Both the position numbers and the translations under genes were made by a program. Shown here in pieces: positions 384 to 45,652 of a DNA stretch of 64,000 nucleotides. The stretch lies in sequence record OZ196285.1; one strand, given 5' to 3'. Within the stretch, counting starts at the first letter, position 1; the number at the start of each line of letters is the position of its first letter. The notes beneath the pieces were generated by a model, which was not told the DNA's origin, searched no databases, and saw nothing but the letters and a program-made list of their open reading frames with translations.

Positions 384-1190
384 ATGACAATCACTAAACA
401 AGAAATGACAGCAATCGCACTTGACCTTATGTCTGGTAACAACTTAATGCAACGTGACCTACTTGCTGAAGGTTGGGTATTTGGTTGGTCAACTCGCACT
501 GCTGCACTAGGTGATTGTTCATACCGCGATAAAGAGATTCGTCTTTCTTCAAAGTTTCTGAATGCACGTACTAAAGAAGAGCAAATCAACACAATCACTC
601 ACGAAATGGCTCACGCAATCGCATGGACTGATTTCAACGAACGTGGTCACGGTGCTATCTGGAAACGTGTTCATCGTCAACTTGGTGGTAATGCCGAGCG
701 TTGTTCAACAGTTAGCAACCCTGAAGCAGTTGAAAGCAAATACACGGTGTTCTTCATCAACGCTAACGACGAAATCGAAGTGATTCAAACAACTGAGCGT
801 ATGACTCGTAAGTTTCGCCCACAAAACATCAAAACACTATACTTGGGCCGCCGTAAAGCTGAAACTCAAGGTAAGATTCGCTGTGTAGCTACATCGACTT
901 TCAAATCAATCAAAGCTGATCATGAAGCATCTAAAGCATCTAAAGCTGCTCCCGTTGCTGCACCTGCTCCTAAGAAAGTAGAAAAGAAAGCTGCACCTGC
1001 TAAGAAAACAACTGCACGTGGTGAAGCTGCACGACGCGAAATCGAAGCACATGTAACAGCAACAATGGGCTTCTCAAACGTATCATTCGAACAGCGTGGC
1101 AAGTACAAAGACTGGTACATCACTGCAACAGTAAACGGTAACATGTTTGAGCAACGTCTAGACGCATTCAAAAAGAAAAACGGTTTATAA
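384..1190 (+). CDS. SprT-like zinc metalloprotease with Ala/Lys/Pro-rich linker
   Basis: THEMAH (HExxH) followed by GHGAIWKRV, the SprT signature. Confidence 0.85.
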   Translation: MTITKQEMTAIALDLMSGNNLMQRDLLAEGWVFGWSTRTAALGDCSYRDKEIRLSSKFLNARTKEEQINTITHEMAHAIAWTDFNERGHGAIWKRVHRQLGGNAERCSTVSNPEAVESKYTVFFINANDEIEVIQTTERMTRKFRPQNIKTLYLGRRKAETQGKIRCVATSTFKSIKADHEASKASKAAPVAAPAPKKVEKKAAPAKKTTARGEAARREIEAHVTATMGFSNVSFEQRGKYKDWYITATVNGNMFEQRLDAFKKKNGL

Positions 1191-8516: not shown

Positions 8517-10746
8517 GTTCAAGAGCGTCACATATAGCAATATCATGTCAGTCGGCAACACGCCGATTACTGTGTCGCTAGATGGGTTTAACAAGACGCT
8601 AATCACGGGTACGAATGGTGCGGGTAAATCGACTTACATTGAGGCAGTTTGTTTTGCCTTGTACGGTAAGCCGTTTCGTAACATCAAGAAAACTCAGATT
8701 GTTAACGCAGTCAACAAGAAAAAGCTGCTTGTTGAAATCGAATTTCAAGATAAGCGACACGTTTATAAAATCGTGCGTGGCATTAAGCCCAACAAATTCG
8801 AAATCTACAAAGACGATGAGCTGATTCCACAAGAAGCTGCTGTCGCTGACTATCAAGACATGCTTGAAAAGAACATCTTGCAGATGAGCATGAGCACGTT
8901 CAAACAAATTGCTGTGCTCGGTACAGCGGGTTTCACGCCATTCATGTTGCTACCAGCCGGTAAGCGTCGTGAAATCGTGGAAGATTTGCTTGATATCGGT
9001 ATTTTCTCTGATATGGCATCGATTAACAAGCTTGCGATCAAAGATCTTAACACTAAGATTTCCGAGACTGAAGCTGATATCGAACGACGTATGAACGAAC
9101 TTCGTTTACACGTTGAGTTTCAGAAAGAGCAGCAAAGCAATCGCGATGGTGATTTGGCTCAATTAGAGTCGCGTCAAACTGAAGCTGAAACAGAGCTGAA
9201 GCCGTTAGAAGAGCAGATTTCGTGTGCTGAAGATCAGATTCACTCTGATTCTGTTGCACTGCGCGTGCTGAAAGATAAGCTTGAAGAAGCATTGGCTGAA
9301 GCGAATCAGATTCAACTTGATGAACTGACTCAACTTGATGCTGCACACTCTGCCAATGCCAAAGACCTTCAAGATCAGCACACTGACGAAGTAAACGCAC
9401 TGAAAACGAAGCACATATCGGCACAAGATGCGATTGATGCTGAATACGAAGCTGACTTGCTAGAATTCGACCGCGTTCAAGCAGAAAACTTGTCTACTTT
9501 CGACAAAGAGACTGCTAAACTGACGCCAGAAGAAGTTGATAGCGACAAGATTGGTACTGACACTTCAACGTTCTTGATGCACAAGAAAGAGATCACTCAA
9601 CTCAAAGAGAATAAAGCATTCTTCGAAGAGAACGGTGACTGTGAATGTTCAACGTGTAAGCAAACAATCTCGTCTAAGTTCGCTCAAGATGTGATTGATA
9701 TGGCTGATAAACGCATTGAAACGCTGACAGCCGAAGCCAAAGCACTTGGAGCATCGATTAAAGCGGCTCAAGAGAAAGCTAAAGCACGCACAGCGTTTAT
9801 TAGCGAACGGGCGACTGAACGTTCAACTTTCGAGTCAACACAGCGCACAGAGCGTTCTACGTACGTTCAGACTCAATCAACTGCTCGTCAAGCGATTGTG
9901 AGAGCACAGCAAGAAGAAATGAACATGCTTGTTGGTGATGTGCATAACCCTGCTGTTCGCGAACTAAACGCTGCTCAGTCAAAAGAGCGTGCAGATTTGG
10001 TAGCGAAACATGCTGAATATAATGCTGATATCACTAAAGCCGATGCGTCTGCTCGTGAAGAGCTGACAGCTAACATTGGTAAAGACAAAGCGACTCATGC
10101 TTCAGCGGTAGCGAAGCAAGATAGTCTGATGCGTACAATCAGCACAATCAAAGCTGATATTGCAGATGTGAAATCTAAAGCAGCGACCGAAGACCGTTCT
10201 GACCTTATCAAAGAGCAGACGGCTGATGTGAAGCGCGTTAAGAAAAACTTAGCAAACGACTTGCAAACTAAGCACTGTCGTAGCATCGTAGCAACGTTAT
10301 TGAAAGATGATGGTGTAAAATCGATGATTGTTAAGCAGTACATCCCGTTGATCAACAAGTACATCAATGATTACTTGAAGACAATGAACGCGAACTACAA
10401 CTTTGTTCTTGATGAAGAGTTCAATGAGACAATCAAATCTCGTGGACGTGACGACTTCAGCTACACGTCGTTTAGTCAAGGTGAACGCTGTCGTATCGAT
10501 TTGGCATTACTATTCTCGTTCCGAGATCTGGTAAGTGCTCGTACTGGTTCGATGACTAACTTGTTGGTGCTTGATGAGGTGTTCGACTCTGCGGCTGATA
10601 CTGATGGGGTAGACTCAATCAATCAGATTCTTGGTACTATCAAAGACAACGTGTTTATTATTTCTCATAGCGAGAAGCACGAACAGAGCATGTTCGATAA
10701 GCACATCAAATTCACGAAGAAAGGTAATTTTACCCGAGAGGTTTAG
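8509..10746 (+). CDS. 46: Recombination endonuclease subunit gp46 (Rad50-like)
   Basis: Walker A GTNGAGKS, Zn-hook CSTC, signature FSQGE, LLVLDEVFD. Confidence 0.97.
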   Translation: MIKFKSVTYSNIMSVGNTPITVSLDGFNKTLITGTNGAGKSTYIEAVCFALYGKPFRNIKKTQIVNAVNKKKLLVEIEFQDKRHVYKIVRGIKPNKFEIYKDDELIPQEAAVADYQDMLEKNILQMSMSTFKQIAVLGTAGFTPFMLLPAGKRREIVEDLLDIGIFSDMASINKLAIKDLNTKISETEADIERRMNELRLHVEFQKEQQSNRDGDLAQLESRQTEAETELKPLEEQISCAEDQIHSDSVALRVLKDKLEEALAEANQIQLDELTQLDAAHSANAKDLQDQHTDEVNALKTKHISAQDAIDAEYEADLLEFDRVQAENLSTFDKETAKLTPEEVDSDKIGTDTSTFLMHKKEITQLKENKAFFEENGDCECSTCKQTISSKFAQDVIDMADKRIETLTAEAKALGASIKAAQEKAKARTAFISERATERSTFESTQRTERSTYVQTQSTARQAIVRAQQEEMNMLVGDVHNPAVRELNAAQSKERADLVAKHAEYNADITKADASAREELTANIGKDKATHASAVAKQDSLMRTISTIKADIADVKSKAATEDRSDLIKEQTADVKRVKKNLANDLQTKHCRSIVATLLKDDGVKSMIVKQYIPLINKYINDYLKTMNANYNFVLDEEFNETIKSRGRDDFSYTSFSQGERCRIDLALLFSFRDLVSARTGSMTNLLVLDEVFDSAADTDGVDSINQILGTIKDNVFIISHSEKHEQSMFDKHIKFTKKGNFTREV

Positions 10747-11193
10747 ATGAAAATAATCCCAATGCGGATTGATTACACGGCTGATATTCGCACTATGTGC
10801 GAGTATCTTCTACGCTGTGAACTTCATGACCCTGCATACATTCAAAGTGAACAGCTCATTGGTCGATTTCAAGTAGGTCGAGCGACGGGTCATACAACGT
10901 CACTGAAGTCCGTAGCAGACAGCTTTCGTAAACAAGGTCTACATGTACTTGAAGTGTATGGCAACCGCGAGGAACTGCGTGCGCGTGACGATGACGAGGC
11001 AATCCATTACTCGAAATTCTCGACGCACAATCGATTCTTGCGATTAGGTACAGGCGCACCAGATTTGGTTCTGTTTGACGCTGCGAGTCACTTCATCCCG
11101 CGATTAAACGGCGTCGAGGAAGGCATCGATAATTTCATGATGTATTTGCATCGCGACATTAAAAAAAGAACTGTGTTTTTCTACGTTCAGTAA
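10747..11193 (+). CDS. Hypothetical protein with degenerate P-loop-like motif
   Basis: VGRATGHTT and DLVLFD. Confidence 0.5.
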   Translation: MKIIPMRIDYTADIRTMCEYLLRCELHDPAYIQSEQLIGRFQVGRATGHTTSLKSVADSFRKQGLHVLEVYGNREELRARDDDEAIHYSKFSTHNRFLRLGTGAPDLVLFDAASHFIPRLNGVEEGIDNFMMYLHRDIKKRTVFFYVQ

Positions 11194-11247
11194 GTTTAGA
11201 CCTGTAAATATCTGTGTTAATATAAGCACAGCTTTTGAGGAAACACT

Positions 11248-11463
11248 ATGAGCACAACACTTGATAATCACATGTCAATGCCTGATGTCAAACATTGGGT
11301 TATCGTTGACAGCTTTCGTGGTGAAGAGAAAATCTTGCCTGAAGCACAATTGCTAGAAGTCTTCGGCGAAGACAGATGGCGCAAAATAACGTCTGGTCTT
11401 GACGACTACTTTACGGCGTACGAGTATAACTTCGAGTATACCGAGCGCGGCTTTAATCTCTAA
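11248..11463 (+). CDS. 45.2: gp45.2-like protein
   Basis: 71 aa, directly before gp45; F....W.KI.SG..DY.TAYEY pattern. Confidence 0.6.
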   Translation: MSTTLDNHMSMPDVKHWVIVDSFRGEEKILPEAQLLEVFGEDRWRKITSGLDDYFTAYEYNFEYTERGFNL

Positions 11464-11498
11464 TTGAACAATATATCATAATTTTTGAAGGTAAAAGA

Positions 11499-12164
11499 AT
11501 GAAACTTAACAAATCAACTATTGAAGTGCTAAAAAACTTTGCAGGCATCAACAACGGCATGGTTATTCACGCAGGCACTCGTTTGCGTACTCAAGACAAC
11601 TTGAACAAGCAAATCGCTTACGCAGACATCGAAGATACGTTCCCTGCTGAATTCGCAGTATACGATCTGGGTGAGTTTCTAAGCGCATTGAACTTGCTTG
11701 ATAACGCTGAACTTGATTTCCAAGAGAAATACGTAGTCGTTACTGGTGACGGTGGTACTAAACTAACGTTCCAATACGCAAACGCTGAGTTCGTAACTGA
11801 AGCACCTGAAAACGTGAACTTCCCAACTGACCTTGCGGGTGGCGCTGAGTTCGACCTGAAAGGTGAAGATCTGCAACGCGTTAAGAAAGCATCGGCAACA
11901 CTTGGTCTTTCTGATATCTGTGTTCGTACCGACGCGGGTTCTGACAAAATTACATTGTCTGCGACTGACGCTCAAGGTTCTAGCAAGCACAAATTCGAAA
12001 TCAACGTTGGCACTGCTGCTGCTGATACGAAATATGAGTTCTTCTTTAAAGCAGAACGCTTGAACATCGTTGATCAAGATTATCACGTATCGATTCACCC
12101 TGCTGGTATCTCACGCTTCGTTGGCGTGTCACTTGAATACTTCATTGCAATCGAAGCACTTTAA
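11499..12164 (+). CDS. 45: Sliding clamp gp45
   Basis: MKLNKSTIEVLKNFAGINNG, FAVYDLGEFL; synteny. Confidence 0.97.
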   Translation: MKLNKSTIEVLKNFAGINNGMVIHAGTRLRTQDNLNKQIAYADIEDTFPAEFAVYDLGEFLSALNLLDNAELDFQEKYVVVTGDGGTKLTFQYANAEFVTEAPENVNFPTDLAGGAEFDLKGEDLQRVKKASATLGLSDICVRTDAGSDKITLSATDAQGSSKHKFEINVGTAAADTKYEFFFKAERLNIVDQDYHVSIHPAGISRFVGVSLEYFIAIEAL

Positions 12165-12176
12165 GAACAAACGTTA

Positions 12177-12197
12177 CGGGGCGTAACAGCCCCTTTT
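12177..12197 (+). terminator. Terminator-like hairpin after gp45
   Basis: GGGGC-GTAACA-GCCCC-TTTT. Confidence 0.6.
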
Positions 12198-12223
12198 GAA
12201 CAATTTATTATGGGAAACATGCA

Positions 12224-13174
12224 ATGAACTTTGATGCAAAAGAGCTACTATGGGAACAGAAATATCGCCCGCTTTCAATCTCTGACTGTGTTCTACCTGA
12301 ACGCGTTCGTGAACACTTCACGACAATGCTTGAAAAGGACGAAATCCCGAACATGCTATTGGCAAGCTCTTCACCGGGTACTGGTAAAACGACTGTAGCG
12401 CGTGCGCTGTTAAATGACTTGGGTTACGATGTTCTATTCGTTAACGCTTCGTCTAGTCGTGGTATCGGTCTTGTTCAAAATGATTTACCTGCATTCTGTT
12501 CGACTGTTTCATTCTCTGGTAAGCCTAAAGCGGTAATTCTAGACGAAGCAGATAACCTAACGGCTGATGCTCAGAAAGCATTACGTGGTTTGATTGAGCA
12601 GTACAGCAAAAACGTTCGCTTTGTTCTTACGTGTAACTACGCACAAAAGATTCTAAAGCCGATTCGTTCACGTCTTCAAACGTTCGAGTTTGTCTATGAC
12701 AAAACAGAGCAGCTATCTTGCATCAAGCAGATGATTGTTCGCTCGATGCGGATTTGTAAAAACGAAGGTATCACGGTATCAAACGCTGCTGTTCTCAAAG
12801 AGCTAGTGAAGCGTAACTACCCTGATAACCGAGCAACAGTTGTGGCATTGCAGAACTATTCGCGTAATGGCGTTATTGATGAGGGTATCTTATCAATCAT
12901 CACCGCCAACGACGACATTTCTGAAATGATCGCTGCACTGAAAACGAAAGATTTCAAGACAATTCGTGCTCTAATTCCGAAATACTCTGGTGATATTGCA
13001 TCGTTTCTTCATAATCTTTACAAAGCAGCATATACAGACCTAGATGGCAATAGTATCCCTGTATTCATTCAATTGGTTGGTGAAGCAAACAACAACGCGA
13101 CGACTTGTGTCGATACCGAAATTCTTTTAGCGTACACTCTAGTGCAAATTATGCTTGAATGTACATTCAACTAG
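12224..13174 (+). CDS. 44: Clamp loader large subunit gp44
   Basis: WEQKYRP, SPGTGKTT, ILDEAD, SRL sensor. Confidence 0.97.
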   Translation: MNFDAKELLWEQKYRPLSISDCVLPERVREHFTTMLEKDEIPNMLLASSSPGTGKTTVARALLNDLGYDVLFVNASSSRGIGLVQNDLPAFCSTVSFSGKPKAVILDEADNLTADAQKALRGLIEQYSKNVRFVLTCNYAQKILKPIRSRLQTFEFVYDKTEQLSCIKQMIVRSMRICKNEGITVSNAAVLKELVKRNYPDNRATVVALQNYSRNGVIDEGILSIITANDDISEMIAALKTKDFKTIRALIPKYSGDIASFLHNLYKAAYTDLDGNSIPVFIQLVGEANNNATTCVDTEILLAYTLVQIMLECTFN

Positions 13175-13183
13175 GGGGTCATC

Positions 13184-13669
13184 ATGGACATCTTTGAACT
13201 TCTAGCGAAAGGCGAAGAGGCTGAAGCTGCTCAGAAAGCAGAAGAAGAGCAATTCGAAGAGGAAATGAAAACGGCGAAAGTGAAAAAGCTATCGCCATTT
13301 GATTTCTTGAATAGTATCTACATGAAAGATCGTGTTGCAGATGAACAAATCGCGAACTATACGCCATTCATGGTGAATCGTGGTCTATCAAACGGCATCG
13401 ATACAGTTGTTCATGCGTATGTCATGGATCAAGTAGGCAGTAAATTGCCGAAAGACATGCAGTATGATTATCTGTTTCATGGTGTTCGCAAAGGCAAGCG
13501 ATACAATTCGTGGGCCAAGAAGTCGAAATACGATTACGTCGAAGAAATCATGGACATCTATGAACTTTCAGAGACTAAAGCAATCGATGTTCTTAATCGT
13601 CTAAGTGAATCTGAACTTGAGCAACTAATCGAATGGTACGCCGCTCGAAAAGGGGGCGTGACGCGCTAA
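13184..13669 (+). CDS. 62: Clamp loader small subunit gp62
   Basis: Y.PFMVNRGLS, QYDYL...V.KGKRY..WAK. Confidence 0.93.
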   Translation: MDIFELLAKGEEAEAAQKAEEEQFEEEMKTAKVKKLSPFDFLNSIYMKDRVADEQIANYTPFMVNRGLSNGIDTVVHAYVMDQVGSKLPKDMQYDYLFHGVRKGKRYNSWAKKSKYDYVEEIMDIYELSETKAIDVLNRLSESELEQLIEWYAARKGGVTR

Positions 13670-13704
13670 TAAATACTGTTTTATTATGCTGTTGAGATTT
13701 AAAC

Positions 13705-14085
13705 ATGGACATTATTAACAAACTTGAAATTCAATTACCAGACGACGATGCCTTTCTAAAGATTCGTGAGACTCTTACACGAATTGGCATCGCCAATAAC
13801 AAAACGAACACGCTATATCAATCGTGTCATATTCTTCAAAAACGTGGCGTTTACTACCTAGTGCATTTCAAAGAGCTTCTTGCTCTTGACGGTCGCTGTG
13901 TGGAAATCACTGCTGAAGATATCGAGCGTCGTAACAACATTGCGAAACTGCTTGAAGATTGGAGCTTGTGTTCTATCGCACACCCTGAGTCACATGAGTT
14001 CAGCGGTGACAATAAATTCCGTGTTATTTCTTTCCGTGAGTCTAAAAACTGGACTCTACGTTACAAATACAAAATCGGGGGTTAA
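13705..14085 (+). CDS. regA: Translational repressor RegA
   Basis: FLKIRETLTRIGIAN, LYQSCHILQKRG.YY.VHFKEL. Confidence 0.97.
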   Translation: MDIINKLEIQLPDDDAFLKIRETLTRIGIANNKTNTLYQSCHILQKRGVYYLVHFKELLALDGRCVEITAEDIERRNNIAKLLEDWSLCSIAHPESHEFSGDNKFRVISFRESKNWTLRYKYKIGG

Positions 14086-14089
14086 ATGC

Positions 14090-14188
14090 GTGAAGAAAAT
14101 GAAGGTTGGTCGTGAAGAGGACTGGGGTCTTGAAGTCGGTCGAGAAGAAGACTGGCTATACATTGGTCGCGAAGAAGACTGGTTTTAA
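14090..14188 (+). CDS. Small peptide with three GREEDW repeats (GTG 14090 or ATG 14099)
   Basis: MKKMKVGREEDWGLEVGREEDWLYIGREEDWF*; repeats use different synonymous codons; terminator follows. Confidence 0.65.
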   Translation: MKKMKVGREEDWGLEVGREEDWLYIGREEDWF

Positions 14189-14196
14189 CTGAAATG

Positions 14197-14217
14197 GGGC
14201 TTAATTGCCCCTTTTAT
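14197..14217 (+). terminator. Terminator-like hairpin
   Basis: GGGGC-TTAATT-GCCCC-TTTT. Confidence 0.7.
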
Positions 14218-14231
14218 TTGAGTATTATATT

Positions 14232-14783
14232 ATGCAAGAACAAGAGTATTTCGATAAACAACTAGTGCGTGGCGGTATCTTCGAAGATGCAGTCGTACCA
14301 CTACTCTCCAACATGTTTAGAGCGCGTGATGAACATAACAACGTTCCACAAGAACAGTTCAGCACGATCATAAACACCGCAACATCAAAAACAGACAGTG
14401 AGCACGGGCGCGGACAGCGTTTGATGTACTGTACTGACAATTCTTGTAGTTACATGTTACCTGACGTATTCATATTCGCTCAGGGTAAGCAGTATGCAGT
14501 CGAAATTAAGGTCAAAAAACGCTTCTATCGTCACACAGACGGTTATTTGTACGGTGTGATAGATTCATACAAGATTGAAGACTACGACGGCGCTGTGCGT
14601 CTCATGGGCTTTAATTCGCTATTGTATGTATTTGGTGCTGAGACTGAAGATAATAACGTTTATCTTGGTCAACCATCACAAGCACGAGAGATCGTAATTC
14701 ATGATTTCCGCGATAAGAAGAACCCAAAGGGGTTGTTTCATGCATGGCGAATTAACGATATGCAAACAATCGGAAAATGGTAG
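14232..14783 (+). CDS. PD-(D/E)XK-fold nuclease-like protein
   Basis: G.IFED helix, LPDVFI, AVEIKVK; ATG at 14232 preferred over TTG 14205. Confidence 0.6.
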   Translation: MQEQEYFDKQLVRGGIFEDAVVPLLSNMFRARDEHNNVPQEQFSTIINTATSKTDSEHGRGQRLMYCTDNSCSYMLPDVFIFAQGKQYAVEIKVKKRFYRHTDGYLYGVIDSYKIEDYDGAVRLMGFNSLLYVFGAETEDNNVYLGQPSQAREIVIHDFRDKKNPKGLFHAWRINDMQTIGKW

Positions 14784-14843
14784 TTTAACACTCTCATATA
14801 CGCTGCTAACATACACTCAACGACTAACTTGTGAAGGACTAAA

Positions 14844-17396
14844 ATGAGCATTTATACATCAATTGAACGAATCGGATCTAATCTCTGCGAACGCTACATC
14901 GACGACGATGGCAAAGAGCACATGCGCAAAGTGAAGTATGAGCCGACATTGTTCATTCACTGTAACGAAGAAACTGGTTACAGCGACATCTACGGACGCA
15001 ACTGTCGCCCGAAGCTGTTTGATTCTATGGGCGATGCATCGCGCTACGTAAAAGAAACGAAACAATTCAACGAAGTGTTAGGCATGGACGATTTCGTCGT
15101 GACTTACATTTCTGATCAGTACAAGCAACGCGAATTTGACATGAAGCGCATTCGTATTGCTAATATCGATATCGAAACACCGTCAGTTGAGTTCCCAGAA
15201 GCTGTACACGCGCCAGTGCCAATTACATCAATCGGTCACTACGACAACATCGAAGACAAATTCTTCGTGTACGGTATTCCATCGAACACTGAATGGTCAC
15301 GCGAAAGCTCAATCGTTAAGCCTGAGTTGCTTGATAAGACAGTGTACATTCGCTGTGCAAACGAAAAAGAGTTGCTGGTCAAGTATCTTCAGTTCTGGCG
15401 TGAAAACACACCTGCAATCGTTACTGGTTGGAACATCGAATCGTTCGATATGCCGTACATCGCGAATCGTTACAAGAAGATTTTCGGTGAGAAAGTGATG
15501 AACAGCTTGTCGCCTTGGGGTAAAGTGAACATCACGAATACAGTGAACGACTACGGTCAAGAAATCTGTAAAGTGAACATCTTAGGTGTTGCGGAACTCG
15601 ATTACATTCAACTGTACAAAAAGTTCACGTATCAGACTCGTCCGTCGTATCGTCTTGATTACATCGGTGAAGTTGAGCTAGGTGAGAACAAGGTTGAATT
15701 CGCGCAAGCAAACTACCTTGAGTTTTACGAACAAGATTATCAGAACTTCATTGATTATCAGATTCAAGATGTTAACTTGGTTAAGCGTCTCGATGAGAAG
15801 CTTCAACTGTTGCTTTTGACTGTATCACTTGCGTACTACGCGGGTATCAACTATCAAACGGTACTTGGTACAATCAAGCCGTGGGATGCTATCATCTTCA
15901 ACTCTCTGAAGTCTCAGAAGAAAGTTGTACCGATGATGCGTTCTCATGAGGGTGGTCGATTCATGGGTGCATTCGTTAAAGCACCTCAGGTTGGTTATCA
16001 TCGCGGCATTGGCTCTTTCGATTTAACGTCACTATACCCGTCAATCATTCGTGAGTGTAATATCTCGCCAGAAACGATTGTTGGTCAGCTTGACTACGAT
16101 GGTTCACTTGAAGATCGTATCGATAAGATTGTTGATTATGCAGTGTCATTCCCTGCTGATGAGCTTTCGAACAGTGCTAACGGCATGCAGTATCGCAAAG
16201 ACGTTCGTGGCGTAATCCCGATTGAGATTGAAAAGGTCTTCTTTCAGCGTAAAGATAACAAGAACAAGTCTTTTGAGTATCAACAGCTTGCTATTGACAT
16301 CGAGAAGCGCATTGCAGACGAAGGTGGCGATGACGCGCTGATCTCTGAACTTGCCGAAGCTAAACATCAAGCGAAAATCTACGATGTTCAGCAAATGGCT
16401 CGTAAGATTCTTATCAACTCGCTTTATGGCGCGTTAGGTAATGAATATTTCAGATTCTACGATCTACGTAATGCAGAAGCGGTAACAGCATATGGTCAGC
16501 TTTCTATCAAATGGGTTGCGCGTGACGTGAACATTTGGTTGAACAAGATGTGTAAAACAACTGACAAAGACTACGTGATTTATGGCGATACCGATTCAAT
16601 CTACGTTAACTTTGATCCGCTGCTTGAACTGCTTGGCATCAATAAGCTTGAGGGTGACGCGTACACTGACAAGTTTAGTAAAGTGTGCGAAACTGTCGAG
16701 AAGAAAGTTATCAACCCGTCTTACGACGCGCTGCACAAGTACATGAACACGTACGAACGTCAAATGTTCATGGATCGTGAGGTACTTGCACGTACTGGCT
16801 TCTTTATCGCGAAAAAACGTTACGCGCTTGACGTACAAGATAATGAGGGCATTCGTAAGCCGAAGCTGAAAATCATGGGTATCGAGACTCAACGTAGTTC
16901 AACGCCACCGCTATGTCAGAAAGGTCTTAAAGAGTCGATTCGTTTGATTCTGCAAGACGGACAAGACAGCTTGCAAGCGTACGTGAAAGACTACGAAGTA
17001 GAGTTCAAGAAAGCGCCTTATCAAGAAATTTCGTTCGTGTCTAGTGCAAACAACATGGCGAAATACTCTGATGATAAAGGCAATCCTGGTAAAGGCTGCC
17101 CGGGTCACGTGAAAGGTGCGCTGTACTACAACAGACTTGCCGAAGAACATGGTTTTGACAAGATCAATGAGGGCGACAAAATCGCTGTTGTGTTCTTGAC
17201 TCGAAACAAGCATGGTATTGATCGAATTGCTTACCCGTCTGGTGGTCGTTTGCCCGATGCGATAACGTACCTAATCGACCATATTGATTACAATCGTCTG
17301 TACGAAGATAAGTTCATCAAGCCGCTTAACGCGATTGCTGAAGCTATCAAGTGGGACTACAAGAAAACGATTACGTTGGAGAGTTTCTTTGGGTAA
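14844..17396 (+). CDS. 43: Family B DNA polymerase gp43
   Basis: DIET exo [25 protein letters not shown]; uninterrupted 850 aa. Confidence 0.99.
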
Positions 17397-17655
17397 TGTA
17401 GATGGAATTGCGTACAACGAGTCTGACGATGTGACACCGATTGGTATCGTGTCGTCTGACTATGTACCGACAGTGAGCGAATACAAAGTGGCAAATGATA
17501 CAGTTCTCGATATTGATTCGTGGGCTGTTTATCATGATGTTGTCGAAATCACGCTAAAGAACAAGACGCATACTCAATATGGTATTGAACATCCCGCGAA
17601 GGTAATAATTGATCGCGTGAAGTTGAAAGAATTCCTGAAAGATGTGTTAAAATAA
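17389..17655 (+). CDS. Hypothetical protein (TTG start with GGAG RBS)
   Basis: Open frame fills gap between gp43 and rnlA promoter. Confidence 0.45.
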
Positions 17656-17658
17656 CGA

Positions 17659-17687
17659 TTGACAGTGTGCATCGAAGAGTGTACACT
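17659..17687 (+). promoter_or_regulatory. Sigma70-type promoter of rnlA
   Basis: TTGACA-17bp-TACACT. Confidence 0.75.
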
Positions 17688-17719
17688 GTTAAAACGCTTT
17701 TATTATAGAGAAAAATATC

Positions 17720-18889
17720 ATGGAAATGAAGAAGTTCACACCGAAAAAATTATACGCTGCTTTGATGGCGCTGAACAACGATGAATCTGCTGATGGCAAG
17801 TTCTTCTTTGCCGACATTGTATCACCTCAGGGTGAGAACTTCCGTCTTTTCAGCTATCACATTGCATCGTACTCAGATTGGTTGCTCGACGCTGCTTTAG
17901 AGTCGCGTGGCATCATGTTTCAAGTCGATGAGGACGGTAATTTCATTCGTATCGTATCACGCCCGATGGAAAAGTTCTTCAACTTGTTTGAGAACCCGTT
18001 CACGATGGGTCTTGATCTGACTACGACTGTTCAAATGTTAGACAAAGCCGATGGTTCACTGATCAGCACTTACTTGACTGGTGATACGTTCGCGCTGAAG
18101 TCAAAAGGCTCAATCTACTCAGAGCAAGCAGTCGCAGCAAACCGCTACATCAAAGCCGATGAGAATCGCGATCTATGGGAATTCTGTCACGACCTAGCTA
18201 CGGCTGGTTTCACAGTGAACATGGAATGGGTAGCACCGAACAACCGTATCGTTCTTGAGTACGATGAAGCACGCTTGATCATCTTAAACATTCGTAACAA
18301 CGAAACTGGCGAATATATGTCGTTCGACGACATCCCTGTTGGCGCGTTTCAGCGTATTCGTGGTTGGATTGTTGATGAGTACGACCCGACTATTGCCCAT
18401 GCACCAGAGTTTTTCGACGAGTTGCGTGCGAAAACTGGTATTGAGGGCGTGATCTTGCGTCTAGCAAGCGGTCAGTCGCTTAAAATCAAGACTCAGTGGT
18501 ATGTTGATCTGCACTCGCAGAAAGACTCAGTGAACGTGCCTAAACGTTTGGTGACTACTATCTTGCACAACAATCACGATGACTTGTACGCGCTGTTCGC
18601 AGACGACAAGCCAACTGTTGCTCGTATTCAAGAGTTCGATAAGCACGTTGTGTCTGTCGTTAACACGACGTTCCGCGCTGTGTGTGATTTTTATCGCGAC
18701 AATCGTCATCTTTCTCGTAAAGACTTCGCGATCAAAGGTCAAGCTGTATTGAAGCCGTGGGAATTCGGTGTATTGATGAAAGTGTATCAAGCACAATCGC
18801 TTGAAGGCGCAATGCAAGGCACGATTGATGTTTACTTACGTAAGCCTGAGTTGTGTGTACCTGAGAAATACCTAAACGAGGGCAAGTGA
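17720..18889 (+). CDS. rnlA: RNA ligase 1
   Basis: ESRGIMF, SRPMEKFFN, DKADGSL (KxDG), NRIV, IEGVI, LKIK. Confidence 0.96.
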   Translation: MEMKKFTPKKLYAALMALNNDESADGKFFFADIVSPQGENFRLFSYHIASYSDWLLDAALESRGIMFQVDEDGNFIRIVSRPMEKFFNLFENPFTMGLDLTTTVQMLDKADGSLISTYLTGDTFALKSKGSIYSEQAVAANRYIKADENRDLWEFCHDLATAGFTVNMEWVAPNNRIVLEYDEARLIILNIRNNETGEYMSFDDIPVGAFQRIRGWIVDEYDPTIAHAPEFFDELRAKTGIEGVILRLASGQSLKIKTQWYVDLHSQKDSVNVPKRLVTTILHNNHDDLYALFADDKPTVARIQEFDKHVVSVVNTTFRAVCDFYRDNRHLSRKDFAIKGQAVLKPWEFGVLMKVYQAQSLEGAMQGTIDVYLRKPELCVPEKYLNEGK

Positions 18890-18890
18890 T

Positions 18891-19112
18891 ATGCACGTTG
18901 ATCTAAACGAATTCAGTCAAAAAATGCCGCCATTTCTAGACGCACTTAAAACGCGGCTAGACGCAGACAATCGCGGTGGTAAAATCATCTTCGCAGGCAC
19001 AACTCAGGCTCATAACTTGGTTGGATTTGATGTGCATATCGAAGACAAGAATGGCTTGGTGTCGAAGTTCTTTATCGACCCCCTCACCAATTCGTGGGAG
19101 CCAGTTTACTAG
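18891..19112 (+). CDS. Hypothetical protein
   Basis: 73-aa ORF with RBS. Confidence 0.6.
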   Translation: MHVDLNEFSQKMPPFLDALKTRLDADNRGGKIIFAGTTQAHNLVGFDVHIEDKNGLVSKFFIDPLTNSWEPVY

Positions 19113-19119
19113 ATAAATA
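19112..19119 (+). promoter_or_regulatory. Late promoter-like element for spanin genes
   Basis: GATAAATA 31 nt upstream of i-spanin ATG. Confidence 0.55.
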
Positions 19120-19149
19120 CTCCTGTATATTGAATATAGGAGGAATATC

Positions 19150-19533
19150 ATGTTTGCGAAATACAAAATCTACTTCATATTCGCAGCGATTCTTGCGTCT
19201 GTGCTGACTATTGGCTATTTGAAAGTTCAGAACATTGGGCTTGAGAAGGACATTGTGAGCTTAGACGCAGAAGTAGCGGTCTTGACTGAAGACAAAACCA
19301 GACTACAGACGTTGATCGAAGGGAAGAATGACACAATTGCCGAATGGCGAGACGTGTACTTTGAACAGTCTGTTTACCGAAAGGCACTTCAATTCGAGCT
19401 TGATACGACTACAGCTACGCTTGAGCGATACAAATCGCGCCAAGACGTTGTATTCAAAAAGCCGGGATTAGTTCAAATCAAGGAGCAACGCGCCCTTGAT
19501 AAGTTCTTTGATGAGGTGCGTAATGAAAAATAA
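19150..19533 (+). CDS. Inner-membrane spanin (Rz, PseT.3-like)
   Basis: N-terminal TM, coiled coil, KPGLV motif; overlaps lipoprotein gene. Confidence 0.85.
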   Translation: MFAKYKIYFIFAAILASVLTIGYLKVQNIGLEKDIVSLDAEVAVLTEDKTRLQTLIEGKNDTIAEWRDVYFEQSVYRKALQFELDTTTATLERYKSRQDVVFKKPGLVQIKEQRALDKFFDEVRNEK

Positions 19534-19858
19534 CATTCTAGCGTTACTTGTTGCTGTTTTCTTGGCTGGGTGTATCGGAACACCTAAGCCAGAAGTCGTG
19601 GTGAACACAACAAATGAGATAGTGCATCCGTCCTTGCCTACTCCGCCACCAAATCCCGGGGTTAAGATACTAGTAATCACTGAGGAAAACATCAAATCAG
19701 AGCAGGCGTATGTTGGCTTTACTTATGATGAGTGGCTAGACTTTGCAAAATGGATGCATAGTTTTAAATCGTACAATGCAGATCTTCGCCATGTGATCGA
19801 ATTGTATAAGAAGCAAGACCCTGCTTTCGCGGATGAAGAAGAGGTAAAAGGTGATTGA
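19523..19858 (+). CDS. Outer-membrane spanin lipoprotein (Rz1, PseT.2-like)
   Basis: Signal peptide with lipobox LAGC, Pro-rich segment. Confidence 0.85.
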   Translation: MKNNILALLVAVFLAGCIGTPKPEVVVNTTNEIVHPSLPTPPPNPGVKILVITEENIKSEQAYVGFTYDEWLDFAKWMHSFKSYNADLRHVIELYKKQDPAFADEEEVKGD

Positions 19859-19988
19859 GTTGTTTTATGTCGTATTGTTAATTGCGGCTACACTCGGTGT
19901 TTTCGCTTTCGGCTATATGATTGAGTGGGCGATTAATCGCGCTGCTGAGTCATATGACCGAGTTTTGAAAGAATTGAACAAAAAATAA
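19851..19988 (+). CDS. Small membrane protein (45 aa)
   Basis: GAGG RBS, GTG start, MIELFYVVLLIAATLGVFAFGYM...; not in ORF track. Confidence 0.55.
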   Translation: MIELFYVVLLIAATLGVFAFGYMIEWAINRAAESYDRVLKELNKK

Positions 19989-19990
19989 AG

Positions 19991-20040
19991 AAAAGGGTTG
20001 CTTCAGCAGCCCTTTTTGCGTATTATAGCTCTATCAAAAC
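19991..20040 (+). promoter_or_regulatory. PeSL-like cassette, copy 2
   Basis: Hairpin containing TTGCTT-17bp-TATTAT then AGCTCTATCAAAAC. Confidence 0.8.
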
Positions 20041-20055
20041 AAACTAGAGCACAAT

Positions 20056-20358
20056 ATGATCGAATTTAAACGTCTGAATCTTTGTCCTGAGAGCAATTAC
20101 CCGCTTTATGTGTACGACTCGATTGACGAGCACAAGCCTGAAAACGTGCTCGATCAGCTCGACGCACGCAACTTCTGGGAGCCTAGCACGGGTAAAACAC
20201 ACACGACGCTTCGCATTTGCAAACACATGAATATGTGGACGCTTCGTGCGACGGGTAATGAATTTGCCAAACTAGATATCGTGAAAGACGATTTCAAAAC
20301 TAAGAAAGCTGCTATTGAGTACGTAAACAAACACTATGTAAATCGTGAGGAAAAGTAA
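20056..20358 (+). CDS. Hypothetical early protein
   Basis: 100-aa ORF behind PeSL promoter. Confidence 0.65.
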   Translation: MIEFKRLNLCPESNYPLYVYDSIDEHKPENVLDQLDARNFWEPSTGKTHTTLRICKHMNMWTLRATGNEFAKLDIVKDDFKTKKAAIEYVNKHYVNREEK

Positions 20359-21488
20359 TGTCTACAAACAAACAAACACTACAAACTGCATTCGGTATCG
20401 CTGATGTTCAGTTCGATCAATTCGGTTCAGTTAACGAGCCAACGCTAATGCGTCTAATCGATGCACTAGAGCCACACGATTCTGTTGCGTCTGACGCAGC
20501 ACGCGAAGAGATCAAGCAATACGATGTACTCGGTGCAGAATCGTATCAACGTCTCTTAGAAGCTGCTAAAAACGCTCTAGCACCGACTGTATACGTTACT
20601 GTTGGCGTTCCTGCGTCTGGTAAGACGACATGGGCTGAAGAAATGTGTGCAAATGACGCAAATATCGTCAATGTGAATCGCGACGACGCACGCCAAGAGC
20701 TATTTGGTCCGTTTAAATGGGGCGAATACAAGTTCTCTGACAAAAATGAAAAACTTGTGACTAAAACTTGTAATGAACGTGCTATGATTGCTCTAACGCA
20801 AGGTAAGAGCGTGATTATCTCAGATACGAACTTGTACCCTGAGTTTCGCAACAAGTGGGCTTCGATTGCTACAGAGTTTGGTGCGAAGTACGAAGAAGTT
20901 CTATTTCATATCAACTATGAAGTAGCAGCAGCGCGTGATGCAGCGCGTGACATGACAGTCGGTAAGAAAATTCTTACTAACATGCTTCAAAAGTACCACA
21001 ACCTGAACCGCGACTTGATTGTCAAGCACTTCAAAGAGAAGCTAGAAGCTGCATGGGCTGGCATTCACGAAGAGATCGTATTGAGCGACATCGACGGCAC
21101 AGTAGCAGAAATGCACAAAGGCGTTAAAGGTAAGCGTTCACCATTCGAATGGCTACGTGTTGGCGAAGATACACCACGCACGAACGTTCTATTCGCGCTT
21201 GGTTTGTATGCTGAACACTACCCGGTTTGGTTCATGAGTGGTCGTGATGGTGTATGTGAGTCACATACGACTGAATGGCTTAAAGAACATGCTCCGTTCT
21301 ACACTGGTTTAGTCATGCGCAAGCCTAGCGATTCTCGCCCGGATTGGGTAATCAAACTTGAGCTATTGCTTGAGCTTGCAGAAATGGGCATTAAGCCTGT
21401 CGTGATGTTCGATGATCGCGATCAAGTAGTGAACACACTACGTGAAGTTGGCGTCGAAGTATGGCAGGTACAACCTGGTAACTTCTAA
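20358..21488 (+). CDS. pseT: Polynucleotide 5'-kinase/3'-phosphatase with N-terminal extension
   Basis: GVPASGKT, NRDDAR, IISDTN, HAD DIDGT, FDDR.QVV. Confidence 0.95.
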   Translation: MSTNKQTLQTAFGIADVQFDQFGSVNEPTLMRLIDALEPHDSVASDAAREEIKQYDVLGAESYQRLLEAAKNALAPTVYVTVGVPASGKTTWAEEMCANDANIVNVNRDDARQELFGPFKWGEYKFSDKNEKLVTKTCNERAMIALTQGKSVIISDTNLYPEFRNKWASIATEFGAKYEEVLFHINYEVAAARDAARDMTVGKKILTNMLQKYHNLNRDLIVKHFKEKLEAAWAGIHEEIVLSDIDGTVAEMHKGVKGKRSPFEWLRVGEDTPRTNVLFALGLYAEHYPVWFMSGRDGVCESHTTEWLKEHAPFYTGLVMRKPSDSRPDWVIKLELLLELAEMGIKPVVMFDDRDQVVNTLREVGVEVWQVQPGNF

Positions 21489-21775: not shown

Positions 21776-22294
21776 ATGATTGTCGGTACTCAAAAAGGTG
21801 ATTTAGTCGCGACATTAGAACGCGCTATCGCAACCCCTAAAGATGAACGAACGTTCTACATGGGTCATGGTTGTAACTGTTTCGTGACTCAAGGCTCTGG
21901 TATTGCAGGTCAATTGCGACGCTTCCCAGAGATTTTTCAAGCTGATGTATTGAATGCCCGTTCAGGGGACCCGCTCAAGCTTGGTACTGTTTCTAGCGCA
22001 TCGTTTGGTGATGACATTGACGCTAATAGCGCGGTCGTGTTCAACATGTACACACAGTTCAGTATGGGTACTAATGAACGACACGTCGAATATGCAGCAG
22101 TCGCTCAGGCAGTATCTGATGTATGTGAAGAAATCAGCGCAAAACAGATGAATGACGTGCTATATCTACCAATGATTGGTGCAGGCCTAGCGGGTGGCGA
22201 TTGGGCGATTCTGTACGAAGTTATTGATCGAGCGTCTGGTGGTCAGCGTGTTATTATCGTCGATTTCGAGCCAAACACTATTATCGACTGGTGA
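21776..22294 (+). CDS. Macrodomain protein (Tk.4-like ADP-ribose binding/hydrolase)
   Basis: GDL, HGCNCF...GSGIA, NMYTQ, PMIGAGLAGGDW. Confidence 0.9.
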   Translation: MIVGTQKGDLVATLERAIATPKDERTFYMGHGCNCFVTQGSGIAGQLRRFPEIFQADVLNARSGDPLKLGTVSSASFGDDIDANSAVVFNMYTQFSMGTNERHVEYAAVAQAVSDVCEEISAKQMNDVLYLPMIGAGLAGGDWAILYEVIDRASGGQRVIIVDFEPNTIIDW

Positions 22295-43565: not shown

Positions 43566-44402
43566 ATGACACTCAAAGCAATCGATGCAGAAGCTGAACT
43601 TGACCAGATTATGAACTTCGTTCATGCAACATGGACAATCTCACACGAAATGGAAGATGGTTTCGTCGCAGCGTGTCAGTTCGCGTTCAATCAAGGGATG
43701 GAGCGTGGTCAAGATTGGAACGACATGACGAGTCACAAGATATCAAGCATGAGACACGACCGACTAATGCTGTGCATTGATCAAAAAGGTGACTGGCGTG
43801 ACAAAGACTCGTACTATGTCATGATCACAACAATCGATCAAATCGTAACGCATCTTCATGACAAGTGTCGCAAGAAGTGGAACTACTCTAGCGAAGCTGC
43901 ACGCATCACAAGACACACGAAGCGTTTAATTGGTACAATCACACCCAAGGGGTATGAAACACACGGCACAATGTCATACAGCGACATTAAAGACATATTC
44001 TGTGACTTTGATGACTTCGATTACTACGATAGTGGTGAACATGCGAAGCAAAAAGCAATGCTCAACTTGCATGACGCTAAAATGACAGCTTCATTACCTT
44101 TCATGGAGCGTATAGCAATGCACAATGTCATGCACAACGATGTGAATCAAGGTCTAACACCACATGATTCGTTGATGCACGCTGTATTCACTCATGGTTT
44201 AAACGTCGGTGAGCATAATGCATCATACGAGTTGATCAATCTGCTGAACAACATGGTTATTCCTGGTGAAGTCACGACTGCTGAAGTACCAGAACGTGAG
44301 CAATTGCGTAACATCGAGAAGCTTCAACGTGGTATAGCTTCAATCAACGAGAAGATTGAGCGCAAGAAACGTATTGACCGATTGATCTCGAATTGCGGTT
44401 AG
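43566..44402 (+). CDS. Hypothetical protein
   Basis: AGGAG RBS before ATG 43566; two similar helical halves. Confidence 0.7.
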   Translation: MTLKAIDAEAELDQIMNFVHATWTISHEMEDGFVAACQFAFNQGMERGQDWNDMTSHKISSMRHDRLMLCIDQKGDWRDKDSYYVMITTIDQIVTHLHDKCRKKWNYSSEAARITRHTKRLIGTITPKGYETHGTMSYSDIKDIFCDFDDFDYYDSGEHAKQKAMLNLHDAKMTASLPFMERIAMHNVMHNDVNQGLTPHDSLMHAVFTHGLNVGEHNASYELINLLNNMVIPGEVTTAEVPEREQLRNIEKLQRGIASINEKIERKKRIDRLISNCG

Positions 44403-44422
44403 GTGAGAGGCGGAAAAATTCC

Positions 44423-44479
44423 GCATCATCTTAGTAGAATTAGTGAACTTAGTAGAATTAGGGATATTAGGGATATTAG
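44423..44479. repeat. TTAG-N5 tandem array, copy 2 (6 units, 9-bp period)
   Basis: TTAG at 44431, 44440, 44449, 44458, 44467, 44476. Confidence 0.9.
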
Positions 44480-44495
44480 AGAATGCAAAAAGTTG

Positions 44496-44524
44496 TTGAC
44501 AGACTCTAATATCTCGCCTAGAAT
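44496..44524 (+). promoter_or_regulatory. Sigma70-type early promoter
   Basis: TTGACA-17bp-TAGAAT. Confidence 0.85.
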
Positions 44525-44561
44525 ACAAACTCTTGAAACGAACTATATTTTGTGGGGTCTT

Positions 44562-45074
44562 ATGAACGAACTAGAGCAAGAACTTGAACGCATGTCTTTT
44601 GACTCAGTAGACGAAGATGATATCGCAGTCACCGTCTCATGCGTAGGTATGAACAACTACTACACTGTTTGCCCTAGTGAATTCAAAGACTTTTTGGACG
44701 AACATGATGAGGTGACTTATGTAGCATTTGATTGGAACGCTATCCCAAATGAACTACAAACTGAACAGATTGACTATGACGAAATGATGGCATGGTTTGA
44801 CTCTGAACAGCGCGATATTGTAGAAATTCTTGTAAATCAACGCATCGCGATGTCATTCGAAGACGCTGATGAAATGCTTGTTCGAACAAGCATATTCAAC
44901 GGCTCAAAAGAAGACTATGCACGTGAATACGCTGAAGTGATGGGCATTGATGTTGATAAACTGCCGACACTCATTGCAAGTAACATCAATTGGGGTGATG
45001 TATTCATCGACTTAGACGCTGAAGGTATGATTTATCAGATAAGTCGTGAGAAATTCTTAACAGTAAATGGTTAA
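44562..45074 (+). CDS. ArdA-like antirestriction (DNA mimic) protein
   Basis: Very acidic 170 aa; F.G..EDYA.EY.E..G...LP..I..NINW...DL resembles ArdA C-terminal region. Confidence 0.6.
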   Translation: MNELEQELERMSFDSVDEDDIAVTVSCVGMNNYYTVCPSEFKDFLDEHDEVTYVAFDWNAIPNELQTEQIDYDEMMAWFDSEQRDIVEILVNQRIAMSFEDADEMLVRTSIFNGSKEDYAREYAEVMGIDVDKLPTLIASNINWGDVFIDLDAEGMIYQISREKFLTVNG

Positions 45075-45076
45075 TA

Positions 45077-45652
45077 ATGAGCAGCACGAAAGGTGTCGTC
45101 AATAAAGACGATTATTATGCGACTCCCGAGTGGTTAGTTAGAGAGTTTCTAGCAGCATTCGAGAGTCGCCTACAGTTCAAGCACAGTAAGTCAATGTCAG
45201 GTATGAACGTACTTGATCCTTGTTGCGGTGGTTGTTCTGAACATGGCGCTACTTACCCAATAGTCTACAAAGACATGTATCATGTTGATATCGACACTAT
45301 GGACATTCGAGAGGACAGTCACGCGCAATTGGTTGCGAACTATCTCGAAACACCTGCTGCGATGCAATATGACATGATCATGACTAATCCACCATTCAGC
45401 TCTTCAGTCGATTTTGCACTGAAAGCGTTATCCGAAGTCGATGATGGTGGTTACGTTGTAATGTTGCAACGTCTAAACTGGTTAGGTAGCATTAAGCGCA
45501 AGCCATTCTGGGATGCATCGCCTCTTAGAATGATATTTGTGCACCACAAGCGCCCTAGCTTTCACGGTACAAAAGGCACAGACTCAATCGAGTACGCGCA
45601 CTTTGTGTTCGAGAAAGGCTATGATGGCCCAACTGAACTGGTAGTTATATGA
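45077..45652 (+). CDS. DNA amino-methyltransferase (N6A/N4C)
   Basis: DDYYATP, VLDPCCG, MTNPPF. Confidence 0.88.
   Translation: MSSTKGVVNKDDYYATPEWLVREFLAAFESRLQFKHSKSMSGMNVLDPCCGGCSEHGATYPIVYKDMYHVDIDTMDIREDSHAQLVANYLETPAAMQYDMIMTNPPFSSSVDFALKALSEVDDGGYVVMLQRLNWLGSIKRKPFWDASPLRMIFVHHKRPSFHGTKGTDSIEYAHFVFEKGYDGPTELVVI

Follow-up and report, generated by a model that had tools for sequence, protein, structure and literature searches.

A hairpin-led TTAG module repeated in KVP40-like Vibrio phages and in Vibrio chromosomal islands, a candidate docking site for phage machinery

What is the function of six TTAG units, repeated every 9 bp, that lie between two genes of a phage genome? We analyzed a window of 64,000 bp that corresponds to bases 62001-126000 of the 228,383-bp record of Vibrio phage F86 (OZ196285.1); the 3 kb around the array were 100% identical to F86. 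F86 is a KVP40-like T4-type phage that encodes rIIA/B, uvsY, gp55, Alc, Alt and AsiA. An earlier sequence-only reading had described the array and its surroundings and had proposed that it is independent of its neighbors, either acting in cis at the level of the genome or serving a shared regulator.

The array and its module

The features of the locus, and of a second array (array 1) in the same window, are as follows.

1209-1229, + strand: terminator-like hairpin agccccgaaaggggctttttt ahead of the array 1 module
1234-1313, + strand: array 1 module, with lead-in at 1234-1259 and six TTAG units at 1260-1313
43566-44402, + strand: gene VPHF86_0164, 278 aa, no family match
44405-44430, + strand: conserved lead-in GAGAGGCGGAAAAATTCCGCATCATC, with hairpin and invariant TCATC
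44431-44484, + strand: six 9-bp units TTAGTAGAA TTAGTGAAC TTAGTAGAA TTAGGGATA TTAGGGATA TTAGAGAAT
44496-44524, + strand: sigma-70-type promoter TTGACA-17-TAGAAT with an A-tract in front, reading into the downstream genes
44562-45074, + strand: VPHF86_0165, 170 aa, very acidic (pI 4.05), phrog_15771 (function unknown)
45077-45652, + strand: VPHF86_0166, DNA methyltransferase-like, phrog_799

We found the TTAG cores where they had been reported, at 44431, 44440, 44449, 44458, 44467 and 44476, with an exact 9-bp period and six units spanning 44431-44484. The hairpin said to precede them is present (GCGGAA at 44410-44415, AAA, and TTCCGC at 44419-44424). It begins 13 nt ahead of the start previously given to the feature, and it can be extended to 44407-44427 with one mismatch. 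The promoter was also as described. That is, TTGACA (44496-44501), a 17-nt spacer and TAGAAT (44519-44524) follow the last TTAG after a 16-nt gap (44480-44495), and 11 of 12 positions match the consensus. The array is the AT-richest 50 bp of its neighborhood and its top strand is nearly free of C.

The stop codon of VPHF86_0164 abuts the module (2-3 nt before it), and we found no terminator between the two. On the 3' side of VPHF86_0166 there are small ORFs and then rIIA/rIIB. VPHF86_0165 matched phrog_15771 alone, and its description as a DNA mimic or antirestriction protein is only a guess.

The pattern TTAG-N5-TTAG-N5-TTAG occurs in the window only at 1260-1313 and 44431-44484, and it had no matches in 100 shuffles. 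The claim that the two arrays share unit number, period and lead-in proved correct. At array 1 the -10 (TATAAT, 1332-1337) is 72 nt from the array start, and the hairpin folds on the top strand only. The gene directly upstream of array 1 (window 384-1190) encodes a protein with a SprT-like metalloprotease domain (PF10263, E 1e-19) and a basic Ala/Lys/Pro-rich tail.

We aligned 32 distinct copies of the module from F86, KVP40, VH7D, nt-1, 6E35.1a, two metagenomic phage contigs and one island. The module is ~80-100 bp long and consists of a hairpin, TCATC and six 9-bp TTAG units. More fully, an optional terminator or GCGAAGC mini-hairpin is followed by the hairpin GAGGCGGAAAAATTCCG(C/T)(A/C)TC, TCATC and the six units. 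Most copies have a rho-independent terminator, the GCGAAGC mini-hairpin, or both upstream; the copy under study has neither. The lead-in consensus of the 32 copies is aGAGGCGGAAAAATTCCG(c/t)(a/c)TCATC and that of the array is TTAGTAGtA TTAGTagtT TTAGTGAaa TTAGagaTA TTAGnanTA TTAGnnnnn. TTAG was invariant in units 1-5 of all 32 copies and the five bases in between varied. Unit 6 was degenerate and often merged with a -35-like hexamer. Because the consensus differs from one unit position to the next, the array is one conserved sequence of 54 bp with a 9-bp beat and not a set of six equal iterons.

The top strand of the array contained 24 C's in 1728 bases (1.4%) over the 32 copies, and the array was the local AT maximum (0.70-0.80, compared to 0.56 for the genome). 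The C-free strand, 54 nt long, carries TA-purine triplets with a super-period of 9 nt. When it is read in the TAG register, 43% of the triplets were TAG or TAA and 71% had a central A; only every third triplet was invariant. The main hairpin was 86.7% paired across the 32 copies, above both shuffled and slid controls. Double changes from GG/CC to CC/GG were present in 3-4 copies, reflecting few independent events, and 13 of 32 copies had a G.T wobble on the top strand. When folded as single-stranded DNA, the hairpin forms and the array remains unstructured.

We considered a coding function for the array and rejected it. Two frames are open across it, but terminators, promoters and differing frames surround the copies. 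The frame of VPHF86_0165 is open upstream across the whole array to a GTG at 44403 (window 44403-45074). Small "hypothetical proteins" are annotated over arrays in several public records, for example VPHF86_0317, VPHF86_0343 and nt-1 ORF204. These small ORFs probably do not represent genes and arise only because the repeat leaves frames free of stops.

Copies, spacing and promoters in phage genomes

Had the array been confined to this isolate, the inference of a genome-level site would have failed. We mapped the copies and found the module at orthologous sites in every KVP40-like phage that we examined. There are exactly five copies in F86, at 21977(-), 63260(+), 106431(+), 195994(-) and 221954(+). 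KVP40, nt-1 and 6E35.1a have six copies each, at the same gene junctions. In F86 the genes that follow the five copies are uvsY, a glutaredoxin-like gene leading to gp55, the acidic protein/methyltransferase/rIIA block, gene 1 and wac. The copy under study is the one at the acidic protein/methyltransferase/rIIA (dam/rIIA) site, not the one at uvsY. The gene 1 (dNMP kinase) site follows gp3, and the uvsY copy is directly upstream of uvsY in F86, KVP40, nt-1 and 6E35.1a. The sixth copy, as in KVP40, precedes the lipoprotein gene KVP40.0252, whose ribosome-binding site and ATG follow the array without a break. F86 has kept a homologue of KVP40.0252, but has neither an intergenic gap nor a module at that place. 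The wac site of nt-1 has five units.

The module was present in 51 phage records, all from KVP40-like phages of Vibrio. A strict module pattern matched only KVP40 and VH7D in IMG/VR, none of 285 Vibrio species representatives, and four contigs in metagenomes. A generic five-unit TTAG pattern, searched in genome and viral contigs, yielded unrelated coding tandem repeats among the matches listed. In metagenomic relatives of F86, all differences were confined to the five bases between TTAGs. F86-like contigs from sponge, oyster and food metagenomes break at the module. The relative from a sponge metagenome has an 18-bp insertion (two extra TTAG units) at window position 44471, indicating that the number of units is not strictly six.

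We considered the possibility that the module is a mobile promoter/stem-loop cassette. Such PeSL-like cassettes of T4-type phages occur in many copies flanking variable ORF cassettes, and their positions differ between relatives. The module does not fit this description, because phages of several genera share its junctions and have no more than five or six copies.

The copies are uniformly oriented and evenly spaced. Every copy points in the direction of local transcription, and all five copies in F86 are co-oriented with the genes on both sides. The gaps between copies were 41.3, 43.2, 89.6, 26.0 and 28.4 kb in F86 and 26-54 kb in KVP40. The spacing was more even than expected by chance: the probability of a minimum gap of ~26 kb was 0.006-0.009 in genomes with six copies and 0.035 in F86.

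The distance between the module and the downstream promoter was not the same at all sites. From the array start to the -10 there are 72 nt at the gp55 site, 72-74 nt at uvsY, 85 nt at wac, and 88-99 nt at the dam and gene 1 sites. In every phage the distance remains 72-74 nt at uvsY and gp55, where the -35 overlaps unit 6. At the sixth (lipoprotein) site the start codon follows the array without an intervening promoter. Based on the variable distance to the -10 and the lack of a promoter at the lipoprotein site, the module is not a fixed part of one promoter type. Independence from the neighboring genes, as first proposed, is borne out by the five F86 sites, at which the same module stands before unrelated genes with different promoter layouts.

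The main rival to the reading that we favor (an origin of replication, see below) is that the module is an activator or enhancer array for a missing analogue of MotA, acting with AsiA on the downstream promoters, and that it might serve as an origin too, as at oriF of T4. We regard this as possible but less likely than not. The genes uvsY, gene 1 and rIIA/B are expressed in the middle mode in T4, and five of the six sites are upstream of sigma-70-like promoters that read in the same direction. The constant geometry at uvsY and gp55 (-10 at 72-74 nt from the array start and -35 overlapping unit 6) also fits an activator. We found asiA in F86 (PF09010 match at 166369-166614, E 3.7e-35) and in KVP40. 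Phages of the KVP40 type have a working AsiA and no recognizable MotA, and a functional analogue of MotA has been postulated (PMC2988021). Like the MotA box, the module is built on a phage-specific 9-bp motif that precedes the -10 of uvsY and other genes, in phages with AsiA (PMC2988021). Unlike the MotA box, which is a single copy centered at -30 that replaces the -35 (PMC2988021), it has six tandem units that extend from roughly -37 to -90 or further, at a variable distance and at only five or six sites per genome. Thus, of the properties of a MotA-box middle promoter, the presence of AsiA is met and the single box is not. A temporal class of promoters would need far more than five or six sites. 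In addition, sites differ by 13 to 27 nt in their distance to the -10 and share no helical phase, a promoter is lacking after the array of the sixth site, and even spacing over the genome is not expected of promoters. The compensatory changes in the hairpin suggest structure, not base-specific recognition of a duplex.

A copy of the module in Vibrio chromosomal islands

We found that the module is also present in integrative islands of Vibrio parahaemolyticus, which were identified through a weakly phage-like protein, phrog_16422. Where the module is present, each island carries one near-identical copy. The occurrence of the element in bacterial islands fits its independence from neighboring genes. 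The islands adjoin a peptidase M32 gene, end in a large serine recombinase, and share a conserved block of small genes plus iterons of their own. The family includes L324 (positions 8865-20564; V. parahaemolyticus GCA_054378275.1), L342, L343, L344 and L320. The search through phrog_16422 also led to islands in Vibrio sp. FJH11, and V. cholerae has proteins of the same cluster.

The module of the islands lies within a 1.3-kb non-coding region, with iterons and rep-side genes that belong to the island itself ~500 bp away. It has six units in L324, L320 and L319 and five in L342 and L343, and the order of the units is as in the phages. The iterons are ACAACTACG, present six times, in L324 and repeats of a GTACG type in L344. 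In L344 the module is precisely absent between two 120-bp direct repeats. Together with the absence of the sixth copy from F86, this indicates that single copies are dispensable.

Each island also has a swappable defense slot, occupied by a restriction-modification system and a TIR protein, by AbiC and GmrSD, or by Thoeris and a restriction-modification system. Two of the module-bearing metagenomic contigs had no similarity to F86 at E 1e-10 and carry Thoeris and a restriction-modification system. The absence of the module from the 285 Vibrio representatives and its rarity in IMG/VR and metagenomes indicate that the islands are strain-level and rare. In F86, the gene immediately following asiA (record positions 166647-166940) encodes a Tad2-like Thoeris anti-defense protein (PF11195, E 6e-24). 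This protein and the Thoeris system of a module-bearing island are a possible arms-race pairing.

Some islands carry gp45-like and gp48-like genes of the KVP40 type; L324 has a gp45-like clamp and a gp48-like baseplate tail-tube cap that is 61% identical to that of F86. The islands look like an undescribed family of satellites of T4-type phages. Their induction, replication and transfer are inferred. Like satellites, they are integrative, with a large serine recombinase, variable defense cargo, some helper-like genes (including a few structural ones) and a cis site from a virulent helper lineage. Unlike known satellites, they would have a T4-type, jumbo-sized myovirus as their helper. In P4, cos and the late promoters are cis sites derived from the helper. 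The origin of PLE, the subject of an arms race with ICP1, is another helper-derived cis site (PMC7145576). We found no description of such a satellite family of T4-type phages in the literature searched, which likewise contained no description of the module or the islands (the search did not cover the original KVP40 genome paper).

The islands also have a bearing on what the module does. Satellites copy activator sites of their helpers, as P4 does from P2, and they typically take over the cos or pac sites of the helper. That is, capture by a satellite is not specific to origins. A function in late DNA transactions could be considered, either in recognition by terminase (a pac-like site) or in loading of the sliding clamp for late transcription, with the satellites copying the module for packaging or expression. 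The gp45-like and gp48-like genes of KVP40 type in one island are in line with this, and even spacing suits a process at the level of the genome. Directional packaging would suit the dependence on orientation, and so would loading of the clamp on a specific strand, which occurs in late transcription of T4. Packaging in T4-type phages is regarded as a headful process independent of sequence, six sites per genome would be unusual for pac, and some islands lack the module. We regard a role in late DNA transactions as unlikely.

Promoter-like sequences flank the module in the islands, one ~85 nt upstream of it and another after the array. The latter is a further point for an activator array. The former would allow the module to be transcribed, as would be needed if it were an RNA element in which the hairpin and (UUAGNNNNN)6 bind an RNA-binding protein or control translation or decay. 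The wobble pairs of the hairpin are compatible with G.U on the sense strand, all copies are in the sense orientation, the array at the sixth site is the 5' leader and ribosome-binding site of the lipoprotein gene, and no terminator separates the copy under study from the upstream gene. Most copies, however, lie between a terminator and the next promoter and should be poorly transcribed. We know of no RNA element that resembles the module, a comparison that did not extend to Rfam. An RNA function seems quite improbable to us.

We give very little credence to the notion that the module is a selfish or recombination-prone repeat with no function for the phage. The repeat is dispersed, breaks in the assemblies of relatives fall on it, and in the islands it has been gained or lost between direct repeats. 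A selfish repeat does not account for the syntenic positions across several genera, the invariant TTAG, the fixed orientation, the even spacing and the capture by another mobile element.

Replication initiation as a tentative reading

Based on the conservation of the TTAG core, the fixed orientation, the even spacing, the independence from neighbors and the capture by a parasitic island, we infer that the module is very probably a functional cis site read by the machinery of the phage, with a reader that remains unidentified. These results support the original inference of a genome-level cis site or a site for a shared regulator. They cannot decide among replication, packaging, condensation, injection pausing and a regulator. 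There was no support for injection pausing or condensation.

We tentatively read the module as a docking and unwinding site, most likely an origin of replication, of which each genome would have several. There is no direct evidence of replication, no sequencing run of RNA or of infected cells that contains the region was found, and we hold this view with less than even confidence. T4 has at least five origins, one of which (oriF, also called ori(uvsY)) is at the uvsY promoter; they share no motif, and the choice of origins in T4-type phages is still unclear (PMC3016281). One T4 origin, oriE, contains evenly spaced short direct repeats that are kept in close relatives and whose role is unknown (PMC3016281). 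Initiation of replication is the best single reading of the module based on these origins of T4, the repeats of oriE, and the open, C-free, AT-rich strand beside hairpins.

Like the T4 origins, the modules are several per genome (five or six) and one is at the uvsY promoter. The T4 origins are coupled to a neighboring promoter, and oriF needs a MotA-dependent promoter with an unwinding element downstream (PMC3016281). Unlike in T4, one module recurs at every site, the array is upstream of a promoter of the sigma-70 type, and there is no recognizable motA. The 9-bp period and 4-bp invariant core also differ from the 12-nt repeats of oriE. The requirement of oriF/oriG-type origins for a MotA-dependent primer promoter is thus not met, the promoters being sigma-70-like. 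AT content peaks in the array, which precedes the promoter, and no extended AT-rich stretch follows downstream.

Several of these points count against an origin. The array is upstream of promoters, whereas the unwinding element of T4 oriF is downstream (PMC3016281). At two sites, with the -10 at +72 and the -35 overlapping unit 6, the array looks like an integral part of the promoter. In addition, the islands have their own iterons and the TTAG module need not be the island's origin. Nucleotide skew is unusable as evidence of replication in a replicon driven by recombination.

If the module is an origin, it could work as follows. It would sit in a gap that is usually shielded by a terminator from incoming transcription, just upstream of a promoter. 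Transcription leaving that promoter would underwind the DNA behind it. In underwound DNA, the AT-rich, C-free array would open more easily and the top strand would more easily extrude its hairpin. The phased units, with their TA-purine triplets in a 3-nt register, might then position an oligomeric protein, and a replisome could load. The replication function, the unwinding, and the existence and nature of a reader are all inferences.

We compared the module to other origins. Iterons are usually 17-22 bp long and spaced near the helical repeat, all on one face of the DNA. The module has a 9-bp period such that successive sites turn by ~50 degrees, a position-specific consensus, and no adjoining initiator gene, and in these respects it is unlike iterons. 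In the islands it neighbors bona fide iteron arrays. Like iteron origins (RK6 gamma, cited in PMC3016281, and lambda ori), it consists of tandem direct repeats in AT-rich, non-coding DNA. The TAG/TAA triplets with a G+C-rich element in front recall the DnaA trio (3'-GAT-5'), but only every third triplet is fixed. These elements of bacterial origins were reportedly described by Richardson et al. in 2016. No DnaA box (TTATCCACA, up to 1 mismatch) was found from -80 to +130 in any of the 32 copies, and no link to DnaA is shown.

We looked for the protein that reads the module and found no candidate for a cognate initiator or reader with a DNA-binding fold. The protein common to phage and islands, phrog_16422 (F86_0017), belongs to a small family of ~10 clusters at 50% identity, and its predicted structure is an all-helical bundle with no informative fold match. 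Its gene is 150 kb from asiA. It was set aside as the reader because the link is weak: it is also found in phage D479 and in island L344, of which the former lacks a periodic array and the latter the module. F86_0270 (243 aa) is translationally coupled to asiA. No family, no match to a PDB sequence, no lead in the Atlas and no relatives of known function were detected for it. A match between F86_0273 and a 77-aa island protein was discarded, as it looks like coiled-coil similarity.

It is conceivable that one shared module specifies all replication starts of KVP40-type phages, is read as a single strand by an oligomeric phage protein, may also be the target of the MotA analogue, and has been copied by unrecognized T4-type satellites that sense or exploit their helper. 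We consider this combined proposal speculative and unlikely to be right in full. Whatever probability the readings discussed above leave belongs to functions that we have not considered.

In contrast to T4, the KVP40 lineage has a single short module at all five or six of its evenly spaced sites, and a function as an origin or loading site could be tested directly with a 100-bp fragment. The module also bears on the question of what replaces MotA in phages that keep AsiA (PMC2988021). In addition, it flags Vibrio islands with swappable defense cargo (Thoeris, restriction-modification, AbiC/GmrSD or a TIR protein) as likely satellites of T4-type phages.

Two other T4-type phages have repeated elements of a different kind. 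Vibrio phage D479 (OZ195776.1), in which we found no TTAG arrays, has a promoter-plus-leader cassette (CTGTAATATGGGCTCTGTCGGCCGGGAACGGTCATTAAG) in at least 10 copies, which immediately precede start codons. These cassettes are unevenly spaced, at ~34.8, 56.7, 61.5, 69.8, 74.6, 86.5, 132.9, 137.8, 165.1 and 185.2 kb, and look like the mobile early-promoter/stem-loop cassettes of other T4-type phages. In Aeromonas phage Aeh1 (NC_005260), which has AsiA and no MotA, a TTAG-type array was not found. Aeh1 has a different conserved module of ~150 bp, with GC hairpins around an imperfect palindrome AAGACAAAATAAAATCTCTTATAGATCTTTAATGAGAATCTATTTTGTCTT, at seven loci (~22.4, 49.6, 90.0, 120.0, 148.9, 187.1 and 230.8 kb, with two tandem copies at 120.0 kb). 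The gaps are 25-44 kb and the minimum gap has a probability of ~3e-4 by the same formula. Aeh1 thus represents a second T4-type lineage that lacks MotA and has evenly spaced, dispersed modules, at positions other than those of KVP40.
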